From IMG/VR virus record IMGVR_UViG_3300042261_002385, positions 372,001-436,000 of that record: a stretch of 64,000 bases of DNA. One strand, given 5' to 3'. Positions 8,570 to 52,513 of the stretch are shown here, one piece after another (position 1 is the stretch's first letter; every line of letters starts with the position of its first letter). A program made the translations under genes and the position numbers. The notes beneath the pieces were generated by a model. The model saw nothing but the letters and a program-made list of their open reading frames with translations. It did no database searches and had not been told where the DNA came from.

Positions 8570-9121
8570 ATGAAACACTTAAAATTATTTGAAGACTTCA
8601 ATGAGTATGATTTTGACGGTGCTAAAAACAATCCTGATAGAATTGTGGTCAAATTTGCGCCAGGTGGGTATAATAAATTTTGGGATCAATATGTAAAATC
8701 AACCGGTGATTATTATAGAGGATTAGGTGAGAATTGGACTTACTTTGGTAGTTGGGAAGACTTAGAAGAAAAATTTTCTAGTAAGGGATTAAAAATGAGA
8801 GATGGTGAATATTATCTTTTATATAAGAACTATGATCCAAAGGATATTAAAGATTGGTACTCTAAGGGGAAACCTGAAGGTAAATTAGCAGCGACATTCT
8901 ATTTTCTAAAATATAGCAAAGAAGCTGGAGAAATATACATAGTCTCTGTATATGGAACTGAATATCAATATGTAGAAGCGAACAAAGAATATACAACTGA
9001 TAAACTTGAAGGATATCCACAATCTACTTATTGTCGTTTTGATAAAGGTGATGTAGCTAGATTGGTTGAGGTAGGTTCTATCGATCATAGAGGTTATTTT
9101 GAGGTCGCATCAGTATCATAA
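8570..9121 (+). CDS. N-tagged hypothetical protein (MKHLKLFED)
   Basis: Leader plus first codons identical to the 6526 gene. Confidence 0.7.
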   Translation: MKHLKLFEDFNEYDFDGAKNNPDRIVVKFAPGGYNKFWDQYVKSTGDYYRGLGENWTYFGSWEDLEEKFSSKGLKMRDGEYYLLYKNYDPKDIKDWYSKGKPEGKLAATFYFLKYSKEAGEIYIVSVYGTEYQYVEANKEYTTDKLEGYPQSTYCRFDKGDVARLVEVGSIDHRGYFEVASVS

Positions 9122-9136
9122 ATAAGATTAAAACTA

Positions 9137-36943: not shown

Positions 36944-38281
36944 ATGATATCAAGACTTTCAACATTTTCGGGACCTATATCTACTATATTTAAAAAAATC
37001 ACTAGTTCTACTTCTGTCGTCACAAATGGTTTAGTTCTTTACTACGATCCAAGTAATTCACAAAGTTATCCAGGAACTGGAAATACTATCTATGACTTAT
37101 CTGGAAATTCACTTCACGGTTCAATGTCTAATATTAGTTTTACCAGTTCATATTTTACTTATAATGGAACATCATCACAAATATCTATAACCGATAATTC
37201 CTTACTAGAACCTGGAAGTGGTAGTTGGACAATGGAAGCTTGGGTTAATCAAACTGTTTCAGGAAACGATGTTGTATTAGGTAAATTTGATAACGGTGGT
37301 TTATCTGAAGATGTTAGTTATAGTCTTAGAACTACCGGAACTAACTATTATGGTCAATACAGTGATGGTTCTGGAACAGGTGCAACTTTATTTCAAAATA
37401 GTATTACTGTTACAGCAAGTGTTGGAAACTGGTATCAAATAGTTTTAGTTTGGAAAAACGGAGCAGTAAAAACGTTAGAAACGTTTGTAAATGGTCTTAG
37501 TATAGGAACTTCAAGTCACAGTTTGACTAGCTTAGTTAATACCGCAAACAACCTTTATATTGGAAGTTACAATGGTGGTGAGTATACTCAATACTTTGAT
37601 GGAAAAATTGGAGTAGTAAGATTGTATAATACAGCATTGACACAAGCTGATGTTTATCAAAACTTCTCTGCTGATGCTTCTAAATATGGTTTAGTATATG
37701 ATGAGATTAGAGAACAACTTACCGAATCACAAAGGATAACATATGACGCAGCAACTGATGGCAATTGGATTAAGGTAACACAGACTCAATATGATAATAT
37801 CGCAACTAATGTGTTAGGCACCACAAAATACCGAGATACTGACTCTAATTTTACAGCTGGATCATCTCAATGGGGTAGTCCTTTCTTTTTAGTGGGTGGT
37901 TCAGCAAGTTTCTATATACCGGCTGATAACTATATAGTCGCGTATAAATTTATTGCAGGTAGAACAAATGAAACCTACTCTACAAGAATTTATCAATCAA
38001 ATACTTATTCACCAACTGCCAGTTCTTGGACCGCACTTGGTGTGACTAACTCGTTTGTTACCGGAGCATCAGCTAACGAAGTGGCTTACTATGTAAGAAA
38101 GAAACCAAGTTCAGTTACTCCTATAAATGTATTTATAGCTATCTATTCATCTAACAATCTTAAACAAAGTGTTGGAACACCGACTTATCTTAGCTCTAAT
38201 TTTGGAACATCATTTACTACTTATGCTTCAACAAATTCACCAGCTTTACAAGTATTAGCGACTCCTACAAAATCTTGGTAA
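36944..38281 (+). CDS. LamG-domain virion/fibre protein
   Basis: GLVLYYDPSNSQSYPGTG, WTMEAWVN, FDGKIGVVRLYNTALT; AATATATA 36929. Confidence 0.8.
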   Translation: MISRLSTFSGPISTIFKKITSSTSVVTNGLVLYYDPSNSQSYPGTGNTIYDLSGNSLHGSMSNISFTSSYFTYNGTSSQISITDNSLLEPGSGSWTMEAWVNQTVSGNDVVLGKFDNGGLSEDVSYSLRTTGTNYYGQYSDGSGTGATLFQNSITVTASVGNWYQIVLVWKNGAVKTLETFVNGLSIGTSSHSLTSLVNTANNLYIGSYNGGEYTQYFDGKIGVVRLYNTALTQADVYQNFSADASKYGLVYDEIREQLTESQRITYDAATDGNWIKVTQTQYDNIATNVLGTTKYRDTDSNFTAGSSQWGSPFFLVGGSASFYIPADNYIVAYKFIAGRTNETYSTRIYQSNTYSPTASSWTALGVTNSFVTGASANEVAYYVRKKPSSVTPINVFIAIYSSNNLKQSVGTPTYLSSNFGTSFTTYASTNSPALQVLATPTKSW

Positions 38282-39784: not shown

Positions 39785-40133
39785 TTGATAATCAAGTTTT
39801 GCTAATTATCTAGAATGGAATGCTCATAAACATCAGTATTTACAAGACTTTTAGATAAATTCTAAATAACACTATTATATATATTGTATTATGAAGAAAG
39901 ATAATTTAATTCCTATTGCTATCTTAATCGGTTGGTTTACGATTGTAATAGCATTTGCTATTTACATGGGATAAGATTAATAATATCTTATTTCTGTTAC
40001 TTTATGACCTGAAACCTTTTTGTCTGCTTAAAACGTTATTGAAAATAAATATATAATAAAAATTAGGCGGATTATGAAAGTGATAATCCAAACGAAGAGT
40101 ATTTCAATCTTAAAATAGTTGGATAATATCTAT

Positions 40134-40553
40134 ATGAAAAGAATTAAATCATTCATTTTGTTTGAGACATTTGATGAACAAGATGACGTCTATCAAATTA
40201 CCACTACTGTAAAAGAAATGTTATTAGAGTTAGACTTCTTAGATATTGAAAAAAGAGTTGATATTGTTAAAAATCATTCTAAATTACAAATTGATGAATC
40301 CCCTGAGATTATTGTAATTAATCTATGGAAGAAGGCAATTAAAAAAGAAGACTATGGATTTAGAGCTTCTTATCATTGGAATGATGTTAAAGATGTTATA
40401 GTGCCAGTTATTGATTATTTAGAAGCGGAAGGATTTACTTGGCAAATGGATAGGGGAACGCTTGCTTATAATGGAGTTCCTATTATATCTACATCAGGTA
40501 GTCAGCAATTCGATACTGTTAGGAGTAAAGTAGAAATGTGGTTTATAAGATGA
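40134..40553 (+). CDS. N-tagged paralog-family protein (MKRIKSFILFE)
   Basis: Close paralog of 51612. Confidence 0.72.
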   Translation: MKRIKSFILFETFDEQDDVYQITTTVKEMLLELDFLDIEKRVDIVKNHSKLQIDESPEIIVINLWKKAIKKEDYGFRASYHWNDVKDVIVPVIDYLEAEGFTWQMDRGTLAYNGVPIISTSGSQQFDTVRSKVEMWFIR

Positions 40554-40969
40554 GAAAGATTAAGTCATTTAAGTTATTTGAAAGTGATTATCTACCACTA
40601 AATTTTGATTATACACAGTATGATGAAGACCATAAATTCATTTCAGATACACTTTTAGATTTAGAAGACATAGGATATAAAATCAAAATCTCACCAGATG
40701 GAATTTCTAGTCATATAGGAATTAATGAAGAAATGCCATTCTTTATAATTGATAATAAAAAATACTTTAAATTTTCTGATGTTAAAGAACAACTTCTTCA
40801 AATTAAATCTTACTTAGATGATAGATGGTTTAAGTGTGGTGTTCTTTTTGAAGGTGATCCTAAAAGACTAGAAGTTTATATAGATGAAAAAGATTATGAC
40901 TATTTAGATGATTGGTTTCAAACATCAACTACAGCAATCGTAAATTTAGCAGTCTATTTTAATATATAG
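40550..40969 (+). CDS. N-tagged paralog-family protein (MRKIKSFKLFE)
   Basis: ISDTLLDLEDIG motif. Confidence 0.72.
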   Translation: MRKIKSFKLFESDYLPLNFDYTQYDEDHKFISDTLLDLEDIGYKIKISPDGISSHIGINEEMPFFIIDNKKYFKFSDVKEQLLQIKSYLDDRWFKCGVLFEGDPKRLEVYIDEKDYDYLDDWFQTSTTAIVNLAVYFNI

Positions 40970-40972
40970 TTA

Positions 40973-41452
40973 GTGAAACATTTAAAATCATATAAAGTAT
41001 TTGAAAATTCGGGTTCTGGAAATGCCCAATTTGATTGGTTGAGAAAACAAAATAATGAAAGATTTTTTAAGTTAGCAGATATACTTTATTCTGAAGTTTT
41101 TGATGAGTATGATGTTATCGAAAAAAAAGATGAAAGTTTTGATGGCCAAGCCGATCCTACTCACAAATTCTGGGGATTCAATTTATTAAACGGAGGTTTT
41201 GTAAAAAATAAAAGTGAAATCTCAGACACTGATTCTATTAAATCAATTTTCGTTTACAATATACCAGAACACGAAGAAAGTGAATTTTATGAATTGTTAA
41301 AAAGTTTAGATGAAAGAGTTTTTGATTATTGTGAAAAACATTTAGTCGTTACTCAAGAATCATATGTCAATGATTATGTTTACTTTGACTTTATAATATC
41401 TTTCGGAGATGAAACTGCTTTTTATAACGAGTTAGGCGCACCACTTACTTGA
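40973..41452 (+). CDS. N-tagged hypothetical protein (MKHLKSYKVFE)
   Basis: AATATATA 40961; GTG start. Confidence 0.7.
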   Translation: MKHLKSYKVFENSGSGNAQFDWLRKQNNERFFKLADILYSEVFDEYDVIEKKDESFDGQADPTHKFWGFNLLNGGFVKNKSEISDTDSIKSIFVYNIPEHEESEFYELLKSLDERVFDYCEKHLVVTQESYVNDYVYFDFIISFGDETAFYNELGAPLT

Positions 41453-41467
41453 AAACTTGAATAAACT

Positions 41468-41944
41468 ATGAAAAGAATAAAGACATTTAAACTATTTGAA
41501 TCAGTATCCGAACAAATTATAAGAGACATACTCTTAGATCTAACTGATGATAGTAATTTCAATGTTAATATCAAAAAGGTAGATTATCATTTAGAAGTTG
41601 TTATAACGAGGGGTTCTTATTTAGATTCAAGAAAAACAAGAGAGATTCCAGGAGCACCTGAAGCACCAGGTGGATATCCAAATAATTTATTTTTATGGTT
41701 TGAAATCAAAGATGTTATTATAAGATTATGTGAGTATGTTTATTCAGAAACTGAATTAAAACCAATTGAGAATAGACATTTTCAACAATGGTATTTACAG
41801 GCAGAACATTTTTCAAAATCACCATTTAGAATGAAAAATCTTGGTATTGGAAGTGAGTTTGGTATAGGATGGCACAAAGCAGAAGATTTTACTTTAGGTG
41901 ATTTTATTTCTTTTACTGGATTAAAATTAATAATTAAATTGTGA
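41468..41944 (+). CDS. N-tagged paralog-family protein (MKRIKTFKLFE)
   Basis: IRDILLDLTDD motif. Confidence 0.7.
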   Translation: MKRIKTFKLFESVSEQIIRDILLDLTDDSNFNVNIKKVDYHLEVVITRGSYLDSRKTREIPGAPEAPGGYPNNLFLWFEIKDVIIRLCEYVYSETELKPIENRHFQQWYLQAEHFSKSPFRMKNLGIGSEFGIGWHKAEDFTLGDFISFTGLKLIIKL

Positions 41945-42213
41945 GAAGAATAAAGACATACAAATTATTTGAATCTGTTCAAAACTGGATAGAGATTAAT
42001 GATAAACTTTGTAGAGATTTCGAGTTTTCTGATTTCAATGAAGCTTTACAATTCATTAATAAAATATCAGATATTTGTGAATCAGAAAATCATCATCCCG
42101 AAATCAATTGGACTTATAATAAGATAACTCTAAAGTTATCAACACACGATGCAGGAGATATTATCACTGATAAAGATTTCAGATTAGCTAAATTAATAGA
42201 TGATTTAGTATAG
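41941..42213 (+). CDS. phhB: Pterin-4-alpha-carbinolamine dehydratase with N-terminal tag
   Basis: FSDFNEALQF, ENHHPE, LSTHDAG, ITDKDFRLA; extra MRRIKTYKLFES. Confidence 0.88.
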   Translation: MRRIKTYKLFESVQNWIEINDKLCRDFEFSDFNEALQFINKISDICESENHHPEINWTYNKITLKLSTHDAGDIITDKDFRLAKLIDDLV

Positions 42214-42216
42214 GCA

Positions 42217-42252
42217 TAAAAAAACCTCATCAATTGATGAGGTTTATTTTTT
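42217..42252. terminator. Bidirectional intrinsic terminator
   Basis: aaacctcatc-aatt-gatgaggttt between convergent genes. Confidence 0.8.
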
Positions 42253-42255
42253 TGA

Positions 42256-42540
42256 TTACTGTCTTGCTGGAAATATACCTTGAACACAAATATAACTTTC
42301 AATGTATGGTGTTCCATCAGGTAATAAATCACCTTGTCTTAAGTATTGGCCATTAGCATCTTTCTTTCTTAAATCAGGTAGTTTGAAATTTGTTTGACCA
42401 TCGCCTCCAAACTGAGTTCCTAAAAGTGCAAAAAGAGCTTGATTTTGTGCAATACCAATTGTTTGACCGTGGCAAATCATCCAGCCTTGAGTTTCAAACA
42501 TAAAAACAAATTGTTTAATAGTTCCTATAAATTCATCCAT
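42256..42540 (-). CDS. Phage tail-collar domain protein
   Basis: FIGTIKQF..GWMICHGQ..NQALFALLGTQFGGDGQTNFKLPDLR..ICVQGIFP. Confidence 0.85.
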   Translation of the reverse strand: MDEFIGTIKQFVFMFETQGWMICHGQTIGIAQNQALFALLGTQFGGDGQTNFKLPDLRKKDANGQYLRQGDLLPDGTPYIESYICVQGIFPARQ

Positions 42541-42576: not shown

Positions 42577-43401
42577 TTATCTTAATTTGGCAATAGCTGA
42601 ATTCTTAATCTGACGACATCTTTCTTGACCAACTCCAATCACATTAGAGATTTCAGAAATTGTCATTTCAGAATGACCTGATAGCCCAAATGACATTTCA
42701 ATAACCAATCGTTCTCTATCTGATAAACGAGTAAGTAGTTGTGATATCTCATACTTAACAGAATCAACTTCTAAGTCTTTATCAGTTTCTGAATCAGAAC
42801 TTATTGTATCAATTAAAGTAAGGCTATCTTCATCAAAAGATATTTGACTATCTAATGAACTAACATAAGCAGATGATTTTAAACTTAATTCAATCTTACT
42901 TACATCAACACCTAAAGCTTCAGATAGTTCTTCGGCAGTCGCTGGTCTTAATAACTTCTGTTCTAAGTTGATTTGACATTCTCTAATCTTATTTAAACTA
43001 TTGATTTGATTTAAGGGAAGTCTAATCATTCTGGAGTTATCTGCCAAACTTTGAAGTATTGATTGACGAATCCACCAAACAGCATATGAAATGAATTTTA
43101 TACCTTTAGTTTCGTCAAACTTTTGTGCAGCTTTTATTAGACCAATGTTTCCTTCACTTACTAAGTCAGAGATATCTAAACCTCGACCTTGATATTGTTT
43201 TGCAATACTAACAACAAAACGTAAGTTAGCTTCGACTAATTCGTTTTGAGCTTTGAGACTTCCTTGTTTAATTTGTTTAGCAAGTTCTACCTCTCTGTCT
43301 GGAGTGATAAGTTGTTTAGGATTAATGTCTTTTAGATATTTATCAAAAGACTCGGAATCACGGTTAGTGATTGATTGTTGGATTTTCGTAGTGTTTCTCA
43401 T
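42577..43401 (-). CDS. Sigma-70 family RNA polymerase sigma factor (short Bacteroidota RpoD/SigA type)
   Basis: LVEANLRFVVSIAKQY, DLVSEGNIGLIKAA, KFISYAVWWIRQSI, region 4 ERCRQI; lacks region 1.1; ATG at 43401. Confidence 0.92.
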   Translation of the reverse strand: MRNTTKIQQSITNRDSESFDKYLKDINPKQLITPDREVELAKQIKQGSLKAQNELVEANLRFVVSIAKQYQGRGLDISDLVSEGNIGLIKAAQKFDETKGIKFISYAVWWIRQSILQSLADNSRMIRLPLNQINSLNKIRECQINLEQKLLRPATAEELSEALGVDVSKIELSLKSSAYVSSLDSQISFDEDSLTLIDTISSDSETDKDLEVDSVKYEISQLLTRLSDRERLVIEMSFGLSGHSEMTISEISNVIGVGQERCRQIKNSAIAKLR

Positions 43402-43513
43402 ATAATATAAATATACTATATAGACGTAAAAAGTCAATAAAGGTTACCAAAATTAACAATTTTTTTTGATTTTTTTAATTAAATATATACTTTATTAAAA
43501 AATAATAATTATA

Positions 43514-43750
43514 ATGAAACATATTAAAAATTATAGATTGTTTGAATCAGCTGGTCCAGAAGAAGCTTGGAGAGAATTATTCAAAAATTGGGATGGTAAA
43601 AGTCCGAATGCTCCATGGCACTATCAATATGATGAGTTCAAAAAAGAGCTTCAAGCAGAAGGTAAATGGAAACCTGAATGGGATAAGAGTTTTAACTCTT
43701 CACGAGACCAAGCACAAGAAGATTATCTTACACATTTTAACAGACATTAA
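43514..43750 (+). CDS. N-tagged hypothetical protein (MKHIKNYRLFES)
   Basis: AATATATA 43482; terminator at about 43757-43784. Confidence 0.7.
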   Translation: MKHIKNYRLFESAGPEEAWRELFKNWDGKSPNAPWHYQYDEFKKELQAEGKWKPEWDKSFNSSRDQAQEDYLTHFNRH

Positions 43751-48892: not shown

Positions 48893-49292
48893 TAAAAAAA
48901 GTCAGTGATACACTCTTTGGTATATGGGGTCTTTGCTTATTTGCAATAAAATGGGTATTAGGATTTATATGGTGCCAAACTACCGGTCATAAATTCACTA
49001 CTATACACTATTCTAAAAAAAGTGGTGAATCACTCGAAATATGTGAACGTTGTTTAAAAACAAGAATAAATTATTGATATTGTAAATAATTTTAACTATA
49101 TTTGTAATTATTAACTATCAAATCAAAACCACTATGAAAGGAGACCTAAACGAAATTGCTATCAAATCTATTATACAAGGAGTTATTGCAAACGCTATCA
49201 TAGTTATTAGCGTCACTCTATACCAACTGATTTTCTAATACAAAAATCTGTTCATTTTTCTGTATATTAGAAAATAATCCTTATCTTTGTGT

Positions 49293-49817
49293 ATGAAATC
49301 AACCGTAATTAAACACATCGAAAAATTATCTAAAAACACCATCCCTACGCCAGATGCCGCTGGTAACTTCTATGAATATCCACTACAATCCCTATTCACT
49401 ATAACACACGGTGGAACTAAATCCGGCCACGTAGACCTTATCACATCAGGTAAATTTATCATTACCGAAAACGATTTTAAAGTTGATAAAACATTCGCCT
49501 CAATGTCTATGTCCAGTAAAATTGGAAACCAATACAGATATAAATTTATTGTAACTATTAATGAACCTAAAGAATCAGATATTAAAATCACAGGTTCTGA
49601 AAAAGCCCTTTACTCTGGTGTCTACAAAAAAGAACACACCTTTATGTTTAATTCATTTACTGATGCTAATGAATTCTACTTACATATGAGTGATAAATTA
49701 AACCTAACCAACGATACCTATAAAAATAGGAGATATACTCAATTGGTTAATGATAATGCACCAGAATTCACCAAAGACGTTTATTTAGACTTAATTAGAG
49801 AGTTCAATGTAATGTAA
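49293..49817 (+). CDS. Hypothetical protein, probably leaderless transcript
   Basis: ATG 3 nt after TATCTTTG 49282-49289. Confidence 0.65.
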   Translation: MKSTVIKHIEKLSKNTIPTPDAAGNFYEYPLQSLFTITHGGTKSGHVDLITSGKFIITENDFKVDKTFASMSMSSKIGNQYRYKFIVTINEPKESDIKITGSEKALYSGVYKKEHTFMFNSFTDANEFYLHMSDKLNLTNDTYKNRRYTQLVNDNAPEFTKDVYLDLIREFNVM

Positions 49818-50150
49818 TATAAAATGACTACGAAAGTTGTTTATAACTCTGATTTTTAATATACAAAAATATGCACACTTTTCTGTAGTCTTTCTTAAAG
49901 ACTCAAACTTTGTTTGTAGTATTATATAGCCTAATAGCCTTCTCCATTCGCAAAACTCTACGCTTAATAAACCACCTGGCACGCTTATTACGATACATCT
50001 GACTGAGGTTCTCTATAAAGGTTATCTTATAGTCCATAAATACGTTTTATCTTCATCATACGAGCCGTCTTAATGAGTTTAGATTTGATACGAGCCTTCC
50101 ATGATTTTGCAAGTGAAAATGATGTTACTACATTATCACTGGCGACTTTG

Positions 50151-50342
50151 TTACTCTCCCAATCCATCTTTGACATCCATAAACTTCTTTATGACAAGTT
50201 CTAAAAGCTTCGAACGGTCGTAACCATTCGACTCACAGTAAGATTCAAACCGGTCAAATACTTTGGCATCAATTGTGCCACATAAACGTTTCTTAGCGGC
50301 GTTTTCTCTTTTCGCCATTTCAAATTCATCTTCTTCTTTCAT
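50151..50342 (-). CDS. Ribbon-helix-helix (CopG-like) DNA-binding protein
   Basis: KRLCGTIDAKVFDRFESYC..DRSKLLELVIKKF. Confidence 0.6.
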   Translation of the reverse strand: MKEEDEFEMAKRENAAKKRLCGTIDAKVFDRFESYCESNGYDRSKLLELVIKKFMDVKDGLGE

Positions 50343-50640
50343 AGTATATTATATATTAGAATTTTGTGCTCAAGTTCTGATTTCTAATCGTGGCTAACGT
50401 AAGTAAATGTAATGGCTGACTTAACCCTTTTGACACAAACTTACAAATACAAATAGAATCAACACAAAATCATACAAAAAAACGACCACATTTCTGTATG
50501 TGATACAAATATCCGTTCAGAATTTTGTATCTTTGTATTTTACTTATACAGAAAAACAAACAATTTTTTGTATCAATTACATACCTGAATACAGAAATTT
50601 GACCGGAATTTCGCCCCAAAAATCCAGCCCATTTCCAAGC

Positions 50641-51092: not shown

Positions 51093-51611
51093 TTTTCTTC
51101 ATATTGGAGTAGATAACAAAGTTAATTCTATCTACTAATTGAGGTCTTTCCCTATCGTTTATTATAAGGACTTTGTTATCTACTATGAATTTAGTTTTAT
51201 ACACTTTATTTAGTGTAGTATTTTTAACTTTACCTTTAAGGTCAAATGTTGAGATGCAGAGTATATCTATCATTTGATATTATTAAGAATATCTTTAGGT
51301 AGTTCTGACTCTGTAATGGTAGTTGTCTTAGTTTTAGTTGGAGTTATTTGGACCATTTCAAAATGGAATAATTGTTTATTTTGAGTTTTAGTTCTGACGT
51401 GGTAGTATTCAGAGATTTGTCCTGTAGAGTGAATAGTTCCTAAGTGTTTTTTATCTTTCATAGTTATATTATTATTGTTATTATTATTAGTTTTATAAAA
51501 ATTAGGTGAAGGCATATCTGAGTAGTGGCACCATTGTTCATCGTTCATAGTTTTTATATGATGAAGTGGGTTTTTGGTTTAAATATTTTATAAATTAATA
51601 TATAACTTATT

Positions 51612-52001
51612 GTGAAAAAGATTAAATCATTTAGTTTATTTGAGTCAGTTGATGATGCATTAGACATTTTACCTGTTGTAAAGGATATGTTATTAGAGTT
51701 AAGTGATTTAGATTATATTACTAATTGTGTAGTAAGAAGAATGGATGGTTGTGAGTATATTAGAATAGGAATTTCTAAGCCAGTTGTGATTGGAGATAGA
51801 TATGATGTTAAGGCATCATTCGAGTGGATTGATATAAAAGATATTATGGATACTATTATAGAGTATTTAAAATCCGAAGGGTATCATTATCAAGTGGATA
51901 AGGGAACCCTATCTTGGAGTGGTCATCCTATTGTGGTCACTTCTGGAAATGCCTTTGAAGGTATTAAATCAAGATGTGAAATGTGGTTTGAAAAGAGATG
52001 A
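51612..52001 (+). CDS. N-tagged paralog-family protein (MKKIKSFSLFES)
   Basis: AATATATA 51597; paralog of 40134. Confidence 0.72.
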   Translation: MKKIKSFSLFESVDDALDILPVVKDMLLELSDLDYITNCVVRRMDGCEYIRIGISKPVVIGDRYDVKASFEWIDIKDIMDTIIEYLKSEGYHYQVDKGTLSWSGHPIVVTSGNAFEGIKSRCEMWFEKR

Positions 52002-52513
52002 AGAGGTTAAAATCATTTAAGTTATTTAATGAATCAAAAGATTATAATTTATCTACTATAAAGGATATGTTATTAGATTTTACTGATAAGGATATTGATG
52101 TTGATGTCAGTGAAGGTTCTTGGATTTTAGATAATGGGGAAGTTGAATATGTTAAGATAAAGATTGGAAAATTTAATGGACCTCTTTTTAGTATAGAAAG
52201 GTGTTTATTAGATGTTATAGATTATTTAGAAGAATCTGGGTTTGTTATGATGGATGAGTCTTGGTATTGGAATGATTCTTGGCAGCATTACGTTGGGTGT
52301 CCTAATTGTTTATCAGATGATTTTGAGGACAATTATGGTTTACGTGGAGCAACTCGTTGTAATAAGTGTGAGTATATCGGGCCTCCTGATAGTTTTTTAC
52401 AAGACCAGTGGTCAGTTACAAGATATGATTTGGCAAAGGATATTAAGGGTAGGCAGGTTGAACAAATAGAGTTACTTTTCAGTGATAGAAGGAGTAAGTT
52501 CGGTGGTGGGTAA
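51998..52513 (+). CDS. N-tagged paralog-family protein with inserted Zn ribbon
   Basis: MKRLKSFKLFNE; IKDMLLDFTD; CPNC..CNKC. Confidence 0.7.
   Translation: MKRLKSFKLFNESKDYNLSTIKDMLLDFTDKDIDVDVSEGSWILDNGEVEYVKIKIGKFNGPLFSIERCLLDVIDYLEESGFVMMDESWYWNDSWQHYVGCPNCLSDDFEDNYGLRGATRCNKCEYIGPPDSFLQDQWSVTRYDLAKDIKGRQVEQIELLFSDRRSKFGGG

Follow-up and report, generated by a model that had tools for sequence, protein, structure and literature searches.

A pterin dehydratase of a freshwater huge phage carries an N-terminal leader shared with about one in eight of the phage genes

The tagged pterin dehydratase gene and its surroundings

The window analysed here, i.e. a stretch of 64,000 nucleotides, comprises bases 372001-436000 of a 436,265-bp IMG/VR virus record (IMGVR_UViG_3300042261_002385) that has 31% G+C and is estimated to be 95% complete. 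It contains a run of five consecutive genes that begin with a similar N-terminal leader (hereafter the tag), the last of which encodes a complete pterin-4a-carbinolamine dehydratase (PCD) behind the leader MRRIKTYKLFES and is followed by a terminator-like hairpin (Table 1). Only two codons lie between the preceding in-frame stop and the GTG start of this gene, and no other ATG, GTG or TTG occurs in frame before the domain, so the leader must be part of any full-length product; orthologues in other contigs mostly start with ATG at the same tag position.

A Pfam profile search matched residues 11-89 to PF01329 with 90.9 bits against a cut-off of 26 (E 5.8e-26, profile positions 13-91 of 91), and the solved PCD/DCoH structures 2v6u and 2v6s matched at E about 1e-14. 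The HHPE and LSTHDAG motifs are present and invariant in the alignment, in which H51, H52, P53, E54, Y59, S67, T68, H69 and D70 are invariant across viral and cellular homologues; these residues belong to the motif (HHP ... [YWF] ... STH-D) assigned to catalysis in DCoH/PCD studies. An AlphaFold2 model (mean pLDDT 86) gave a confident predicted PCD fold for residues 13-90, with the two-layer alpha/beta elements E17-19, E22-28, H32-48, E54-58, E61-66 and H77-89 and pLDDT above 90 for residues 20-90, whereas pLDDT was below 50 for exactly residues 1-12, placing the leader outside the fold. The first 39 nucleotides of the PCD gene match those of the neighbouring 41468 gene at 32 of 39 positions, the best match among all long-form tags in the genome, the others scoring 13-29 of 39. 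Thus, the original prediction, which described a complete PCD with a leader in front, last in a run of five tagged genes and with first codons closely matching those of the 41468 gene, was confirmed in every detail.

Table 1. Features at and around the tagged PCD gene (window coordinates).
Position	Strand	Feature	Remarks
41941..42213	+	Tagged PCD ORF	90 aa plus stop; GTG start overlaps the upstream TGA (GTGA)
41941..41976	+	N-terminal leader, long form	Residues 1-12 (M/V-RRIKTYKLFES); disordered in the model; putative protease site L9-F10-E11 | S12
41977..42210	+	PCD core	Residues 13-90; strand-strand-helix-strand-strand-helix; His51-His52-Pro53, His69 and Asp70 invariant; after the putative cut it equals a 79-aa short-form PCD
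42222..42245		Bidirectional terminator-like hairpin	10-bp stem, T runs on both sides; closes the five-gene unit
41468..41944	+	Tagged gene 4	158 aa, MKRIKTFKLFES; no Pfam hit; second shared motif [IV][KR][DE][MI]LL[DE][LF] after the tag; tag closest to the PCD tag at nucleotide level
40973..41452	+	Tagged gene 3	159 aa, GTG start, KHLKSYKVFEN
40550..40969	+	Tagged gene 2	139 aa from ATG 40550, MRKIKSFKLFES
40134..40553	+	Tagged gene 1	139 aa from ATG 40134, MKRIKSFILFET
40048..40055	+	AATATATA promoter-like motif	78 nt upstream of tagged gene 1
40961..40968	+	AATATATA promoter-like motif	4 nt upstream of the GTG of tagged gene 3; nearest candidate promoter for genes 3-5, including PCD
43514..43750	+	Further long-form tagged gene	78 aa, MKHIKNYRLFES; preceded by AATATATA at 43482
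51612..52513	+	Two more adjacent long-form tagged genes	129 and 171 aa; paralogues of genes 1 and 4 by their second motif

The major capsid protein (MCP) of the phage is 70% identical to those of the uncultured huge phages LR756502 and LR745206, about 51% identical to that of LR756501 (735 kb) and 29% identical to those of the Lak phages, with weaker hits reaching T4-like cyanophages, and the same DNA or close relatives occurs in lake, river, lagoon and some marine metagenomes from 14 studies. It is therefore a Mahaphage-like huge phage from fresh water, of which the host is probably a member of the Bacteroidota, as inferred from the relatives and from the origin of the PCD gene. Megablast of the region against INPHARED phages found nothing, and tblastn of PCD found one untagged partial hit in a gut phage.

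Distribution of the leader and history of the PCD fusion

A census of ORF N-termini identified three related forms of the leader, i.e. the long form found on PCD (MK[HRY][IL]K[ST][YF]K[LV]FE[SN], 14-16 ORFs), a short form (MK[YH][ILV]K[TL][FY]E.[FY], about 38 ORFs) and a T4-like form, variant A (MK[LI][KR]RY.QF[ILV].E[SAN], about 13 ORFs), which share a basic MK..K start and an aromatic pair three residues apart ([YF]xxF). Together they head about 65 of 528 crude ORFs, against 4 of 1836 windows starting at internal methionines, far beyond chance. The bodies behind the leader are unrelated (7% mean column identity) and mostly ORFans, while those with domains include a cyanophycin-synthase-like N-domain (genome 8581-9126), a class-I glutamine amidotransferase (GATase; genome 48932-50344, minus strand) and DUF5824; a few tagged proteins hit cytoplasmic-looking families such as cytidyltransferase and, weakly, SSB. 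Conserved positions use several synonymous codons (Leu TTA/CTA/CTT/TTG, Ser TCN/AGY, Phe TTT/TTC) and show conservative replacements (I/L/V, F/Y, K/R), and the three variants keep residue spacing rather than nucleotides, so selection acts on the peptide and not on a nucleotide motif. The tagged proteins are more acidic than the rest (−0.049 versus −0.012 net charge per residue, p 6e-5), most of all just behind the leader. The leader does not fit a Sec/Tat/lipoprotein signal peptide, since its 12 residues alternate Lys and aromatic residues, are followed by an acidic stretch and contain no hydrophobic core of 10 or more residues.

By scanning related records with a core DNA pattern, we found 31 matches in this genome (control matches, 1), 42 in LR756502 (2), 26 in LR756504 (0), 16 in LR756500 (1), 1 in LR756501 (0), none in Lak-B5 (0) or Chryseobacterium phage MA9V-1 (0), and 2 in Tenacibaculum phage pT24 (0); a direct inspection of the pT24 N-termini found nothing beyond chance. 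The cultured relatives pT24 and MA9V-1 lack the tag. A scan of IMG/VR for the long form returned at least 118 stretches on contigs of up to 501 kb, many with arrays of three to five tagged genes.

A word-based protein search returned about 96 clusters of PCDs with 60-98% identity from many contigs, nearly all beginning with the leader and some with a duplicated version, MKRIKTYTLFERVSNETKLFES, followed by untagged cellular PCDs of 76-79 residues that start M(x)xW. All 14 PCD loci found in IMG/VR have N-terminal leaders, eleven carrying canonical tags, one being fused behind a tagged paralogue domain (locus L016), and two having a longer extension that starts MKKFSKILEN or similar. In contrast, none of the 80 closest PCDs in GTDB species genomes, mostly from Bacteroidota (Marinoscillum, Flavobacteriales, Cytophagales, Chitinophagales and Saprospiraceae), has a tag-like N-terminus. 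In a quick maximum-likelihood tree (IQ-TREE) of the cores with the leaders removed, 44 of 46 viral sequences formed one clade (SH-aLRT 89) next to the Bacteroidota-rich group of untagged 76-78-aa short-form PCDs. Compared with bacterial short-form PCD/PhhB (COG2154, PF01329), the viral core shows 45-61% identity, the same length once the leader is removed and the same invariant His-His-Pro...Ser-Thr-His-Asp residues, but the viral clade has a characteristic EINW.YNK in place of EI.N.YN. The enzyme was therefore captured once, probably from a Bacteroidota-like host, and tagged early.

These data supported only part of the interpretation in the original prediction, which regarded PCD as a second host metabolic gene recruited by copying a neighbouring tag cassette, with an unknown role as injected cargo. 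The cellular origin of the enzyme and the portability of the tag were supported, whereas recruitment by copying the neighbouring cassette in this genome was not, because the fusion is shared by dozens of homologues and predates this genome; injected cargo remains an inference, which the T4-like head machinery and the motif resemblance fit. Copying and homogenisation of tags do happen as a process, in that an identical duplicated tag sits on two different genes in locus L007. The orthologue of the 41468 gene in loci L006/L007 carries MRHLKSYKLFES rather than the MKRIKTF found here, so that, if anything, the neighbour's tag was homogenised towards the RIKT type in this genome. Furthermore, a comparison of 2,701 nt of the region with contigs of sequencing runs showed that contigs from other samples join the tag of one gene to the body of another, one example skipping 40993 to 41489 with 12 shared letters, and that many foreign contigs match only the roughly 32-nt tag segment. 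RNA-library contigs covered PCD at 90-95% identity but do not prove transcription, and as all runs were contigs, they say nothing about transcript ends or levels.

A possible capsid-targeting role of the leader

The phage has a T4-type head module, comprising a portal (phrog_213), a 699-aa protease-scaffold fusion (genome 269288-271387, minus strand; phrog_207, E 1.3e-30; PF03420, E 1.5e-5, below cut-off) and a gp23-type MCP (phrog_138). The protease-scaffold protein begins MKSVLIVE|N, which compares with the LIE-9 site of T4 gp21, and contains about ten 14-residue repeats Y-[ST]-E-Y-[ILV]-A-E|[NH] followed by one K-L-F-E|N site; both the repeats and the K-L-F-E|N site are conserved among 120 homologues, the LFE site being present in 98 of them. 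The MCP has V-L-E20|N and I-N-E44|N in its N-terminal region. Some leader-bearing genes sit in or beside the head module, namely a 510-aa peptidase with ...YNQLFE|A and a 215-aa protein, MKYLHKFLHHLNE|S, next to the portal.

T4-family prohead proteases cut after Glu, and the capsid targeting sequence (CTS) of the T4 internal proteins IPI/II/III and Alt, cut by the prohead protease gp21, is MKTYQEFIAE (PMC8442874), in which residues 4 and 7 (Y, F) carry targeting and residues 8 and 10 (I, E) carry processing (PMC9026906). The scaffold repeat of this phage (YSEYIAE) nearly repeats the YQEFIAE of the T4 signal, as does variant A (Y.QF[ILV].E|S), while the long form on PCD, with M1, R/K2, Y7 and F10, ends in the same K-L-F-E|S as the second scaffold site. 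Like the T4 CTS, the leader lies at the extreme N-terminus, comprises about 10 residues, is portable onto unrelated proteins, starts MK, has an aromatic pair three residues apart, usually ends in [LIV]-x-E, and heads genes in variable arrays that recombine at the leader; this is resemblance only, with a register shifted by 2-3 residues. It differs in being 2-3 residues longer with a conserved L4-K5, in occurring as three variants on about 65 genes rather than a handful, in its acidic rather than basic cargo that includes host-derived enzymes, and in a Glu that is not universal. The phiKZ-like giant phages (SPN3US gp245, phiKZ gp175) likewise have a T4-related prohead protease that cuts after Glu and many packaged proteins, about 50 head proteins in SPN3US, but the propeptides of their ejection/inner-body proteins are mostly long (over 100 residues), share no short leader, are cut at A/S/G-x-E rather than hydrophobic-x-E and have no sequence relation to this leader.

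We therefore tentatively favour, although at somewhat less than even likelihood, that the leader is this clade's version of the T4 CTS, fused by an ancestor of a large clade of freshwater Mahaphage-like huge phages to a host-derived short-form PCD that is probably active as judged from its sequence. In this view, the leader would bind the assembling scaffold core and take the protein into the prohead, where the T4-type (S77) protease would cut after Glu11 (L-F-E|S) and release a 79-aa protein starting S-V-Q-N-W..., of the same length and start as cellular short-form PCDs, that stays in the head and enters the cell with the DNA. Our analysis establishes the gene, the domain, the forced start, the modular and N-terminal-only nature of the leader, its amino-acid-level conservation, the ancient single-origin fusion and the T4-type head module with matching sites in the protease-scaffold and capsid proteins, whereas targeting, cleavage, packaging, injection, the dehydratase activity of the product and what PCD does on arrival are inferred from sequence alone. 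Several findings argue against this reading. About 12% of genes tagged would be far more, and more diverse, cargo than in any known case; the cargo is acidic, whereas T4 internal proteins are basic; Gln replaces the Glu in 13 of 83 tagged PCD homologues, forming a subclade; the short form often has Thr or Lys rather than Leu/Ile at P3; and a few tagged proteins look cytoplasmic. In addition, tags and Y.EY[IL].E scaffold repeats do not co-occur strictly across eight genomes, LR756501 having the repeats and 1 tag and LR756500 having 16 tags and 1 repeat. The shared AATATATA upstream motif, considered as a marker of late co-expression, also precedes RNR-like and thioredoxin-like ORFs and so does not mark late genes specifically. 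A complex prediction of the protease domain (residues 1-215) with tagged PCD, run without controls, scored 0.00 and counts neither for nor against binding.

As to the role of PCD, searches of the phage for a pathway partner found no Biopterin_H aromatic amino-acid hydroxylase, PTPS or GTP cyclohydrolase I, a further point against the reading of PCD as injected cargo. PCD-family proteins in organisms without such hydroxylases have been linked to molybdenum-cofactor metabolism (PMC3223725); the PCD motif and the Moco link reportedly come from Naponelli et al. 2008. The conserved active site suggests a working enzyme, which we speculate could recycle pterin for a host pterin-dependent or Moco-linked enzyme, although a binding role of the DCoH fold cannot be excluded.

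Alternative readings and implications

A less likely but possible alternative is that the leader is a real peptide signal not for the capsid, namely a short basic amphipathic N-terminal helix recognised by another phage or host machine, such as a phage-encoded Hsp70/DnaJ/GrpE system, a timed-degradation protease (degron), a membrane surface or another intracellular assembly, in which case PCD would act in the cytoplasm of the infected cell. Related contigs with tagged PCD encode DnaJ, GrpE and HSP70; the invariant features (L4, K5, [YF]7, F10) fit a binding helix better than a strict cleavage site; the Gln substitution, the number of tagged genes, the acidic cargo and the cytoplasmic-looking proteins are consistent with it; and the pattern recalls N-terminal amphipathic membrane helices such as that of MreB. 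However, nothing specific links the tag to any of these machines, acidic cargo argues against binding to anionic membranes, and the near-invariant Glu, its match to the [LIV]-x-E sites of this phage's own protease-scaffold and MCP, and the close likeness of variant A to the T4 CTS would be unexplained.

More doubtful is that the conserved segment is mainly a DNA-level module, i.e. a promoter, start codon and first codons forming a joint for swapping cassettes by homologous recombination and giving good initiation on short-leader or leaderless mRNAs, with the peptide incidental and PCD an ordinary auxiliary metabolic gene. This is consistent with the tag-to-body joints, the duplicated tag in L007, the tandem arrays in IMG/VR contigs, and the AATATATA motif lying 0-9 nt upstream of 63 start codons. 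T4-like phages shuffle cassettes through short conserved segments at gene starts in hyperplastic regions (PeSL), the internal-protein palette being the first example (PMC4122927), but here the joint lies in the coding leader itself, plus the AATATATA motif, rather than in a promoter-stem-loop. The amino-acid-level conservation and the persistence of the tag on PCD down to about 60% protein identity weaken this reading, and recombination at tags is equally expected if they are functional signals, as at the T4 IP locus. Finally, that the tag is a wrong start, a gene-calling artefact or the normal N-terminus of this PCD subfamily is essentially excluded: although the start is GTG, Bacteroidota-type genes lack clear Shine-Dalgarno sites and long-form cellular PCDs have about 15 extra N-terminal residues, the two conditions set beforehand as refuting the tag, a downstream start and similar N-termini in host PCDs, were both looked for, the latter among the 80 closest cellular PCDs, and not found, and the same leader heads unrelated proteins.

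No description of this leader was found in the papers searched. It remains possible, though less likely than not, that a whole clade of freshwater huge phages uses one portable 10-12-residue address label on roughly one gene in eight, including captured host enzymes such as PCD, a cyanophycin-synthase-like domain and a glutamine amidotransferase, to load an exceptionally large, mostly acidic cargo into the capsid for co-injection; that would be a greatly expanded, enzyme-bearing version of the T4 internal-protein palette, with the label also serving as the recombination joint for swapping cargo genes. If the leader is a capsid address, a sequence motif alone would predict the injected proteome of uncultured huge phages, the proteins first to meet host defences, it would show that metabolic enzymes, not only small DNA-binding or anti-restriction proteins, can be delivered ready-made, and it would give a compact natural tag for loading foreign proteins into large capsids. 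If it is something else, it is still an undescribed sorting or recognition signal that marks about 12% of the genes of an abundant, widespread phage group. For PCD itself, a conserved, tagged, stand-alone copy with no pterin-dependent partner in the phage points to an unrecognised use of pterin recycling, or of the DCoH fold, early in infection.

An upstream octamer and a sigma factor gene
By scanning the whole genome, we found that the octamer AATATATA, often TTAATATATA, occurs 169 times, of which 128 copies lie within 45 nt upstream of a same-strand start codon (125 genes). The distances to the start codons fell into two classes, i.e. 0-9 nt (63) and 20-29 nt (34), suggesting leaderless or very short-leader mRNAs. 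The octamer precedes the portal, protease and other head-module genes, but was observed ahead of RNR-like and thioredoxin-like ORFs as well, and it resembles the T4 late promoter TATAAATA. In addition, a full sigma-70-family factor comprising regions 1.2, 2, 3 and 4 is encoded convergently just downstream of the tagged operon.

Coordinates of the octamer, the genes flanking the tagged operon, the head-module and other leader-bearing proteins, and the tag-coding segments
Frame	Position	Strand	Feature
Window	40048-40055, 40961-40968, 43482-43489, 51597-51604 and 32 other sites		AATATATA octamer
Window	42577-43437	-	Sigma-70-family factor
Window	42256-42540	-	94-aa phage tail-collar-domain protein
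Window	36944-38281	+	445-aa concanavalin/LamG-like protein
Window	40974-41005, 41467-41503, 40546-40581		Tag-coding segments
Genome (outside the window)	269288-271387 (locus L003:7288-9387)	-	699-aa fusion of a T4-type prohead protease domain with a scaffold-like region
Genome (outside the window)	264402-265934	-	510-aa PHROG 'peptidase' in the head module
Genome (outside the window)	276424-277071	-	215-aa protein next to the portal
Genome (outside the window)	8581-9126 (locus L024)	+	Leader-bearing protein with a cyanophycin-synthase-like N-terminal domain
Genome (outside the window)	48932-50344 (locus L026)	-	Leader-bearing protein with a class-I glutamine amidotransferase domain

Head-module proteins and genes flanking the tagged operon
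In the fusion of the T4-type prohead protease domain with a scaffold-like region, the latter region contains about ten 14-residue Y-S-E-Y-[IL]-A-E-N repeats, an acidic His-rich linker and a conserved C-terminal domain. More than 1600 homologues of this protein exist in metagenomes, and the top 120 are at least 89% identical in the protease domain. Two further proteins in the head module have leader-like N-termini that end in a [L]-x-E site, namely the PHROG 'peptidase' (MELFKYNQLFE, with A following the site) and the protein next to the portal (MKYLHKFLHHLNE, with S following the site). The tagged operon itself is flanked by the tail-collar-domain protein (E 5.7e-23) and the concanavalin/LamG-like protein, so structural-type genes lie next to the array of putative cargo genes.

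Properties and possible shuffling of the leader-bearing genes
Genome-wide comparison of all tagged ORFs revealed that the tagged proteins are significantly more acidic than the untagged ones, especially at residues 12-41 (-0.082 versus -0.009 net charge per residue). Other leader-bearing proteins carry cellular-type domains, namely the cyanophycin-synthase-like N-terminal domain (E 1.9e-43) and the class-I glutamine amidotransferase (E 2.7e-7). In the relative represented by locus L004, a 287-kb ENA contig with a tagged PCD, DnaJ, GrpE and an HSP70 homologue, a T4-type RNA ligase and PrkA-like kinase genes are encoded near the PCD gene.

Among the PCD orthologues, a subclade (loci L006, L007 and L004) has a duplicated leader (MKRIKTYTLFERVSNETKLFES) with two LFE sites, and in L007 the same duplicated leader heads a different 275-aa gene. 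By querying contigs from other metagenomes, we observed that the tag segments are joined to different gene bodies; in one example the contig skips 40993 to 41489 of the window, while others go back from 41500-41503 to 40546 or 40181, and many unrelated contigs match only the tag segment. This fits cassette gain, loss and swap by recombination at the tags.
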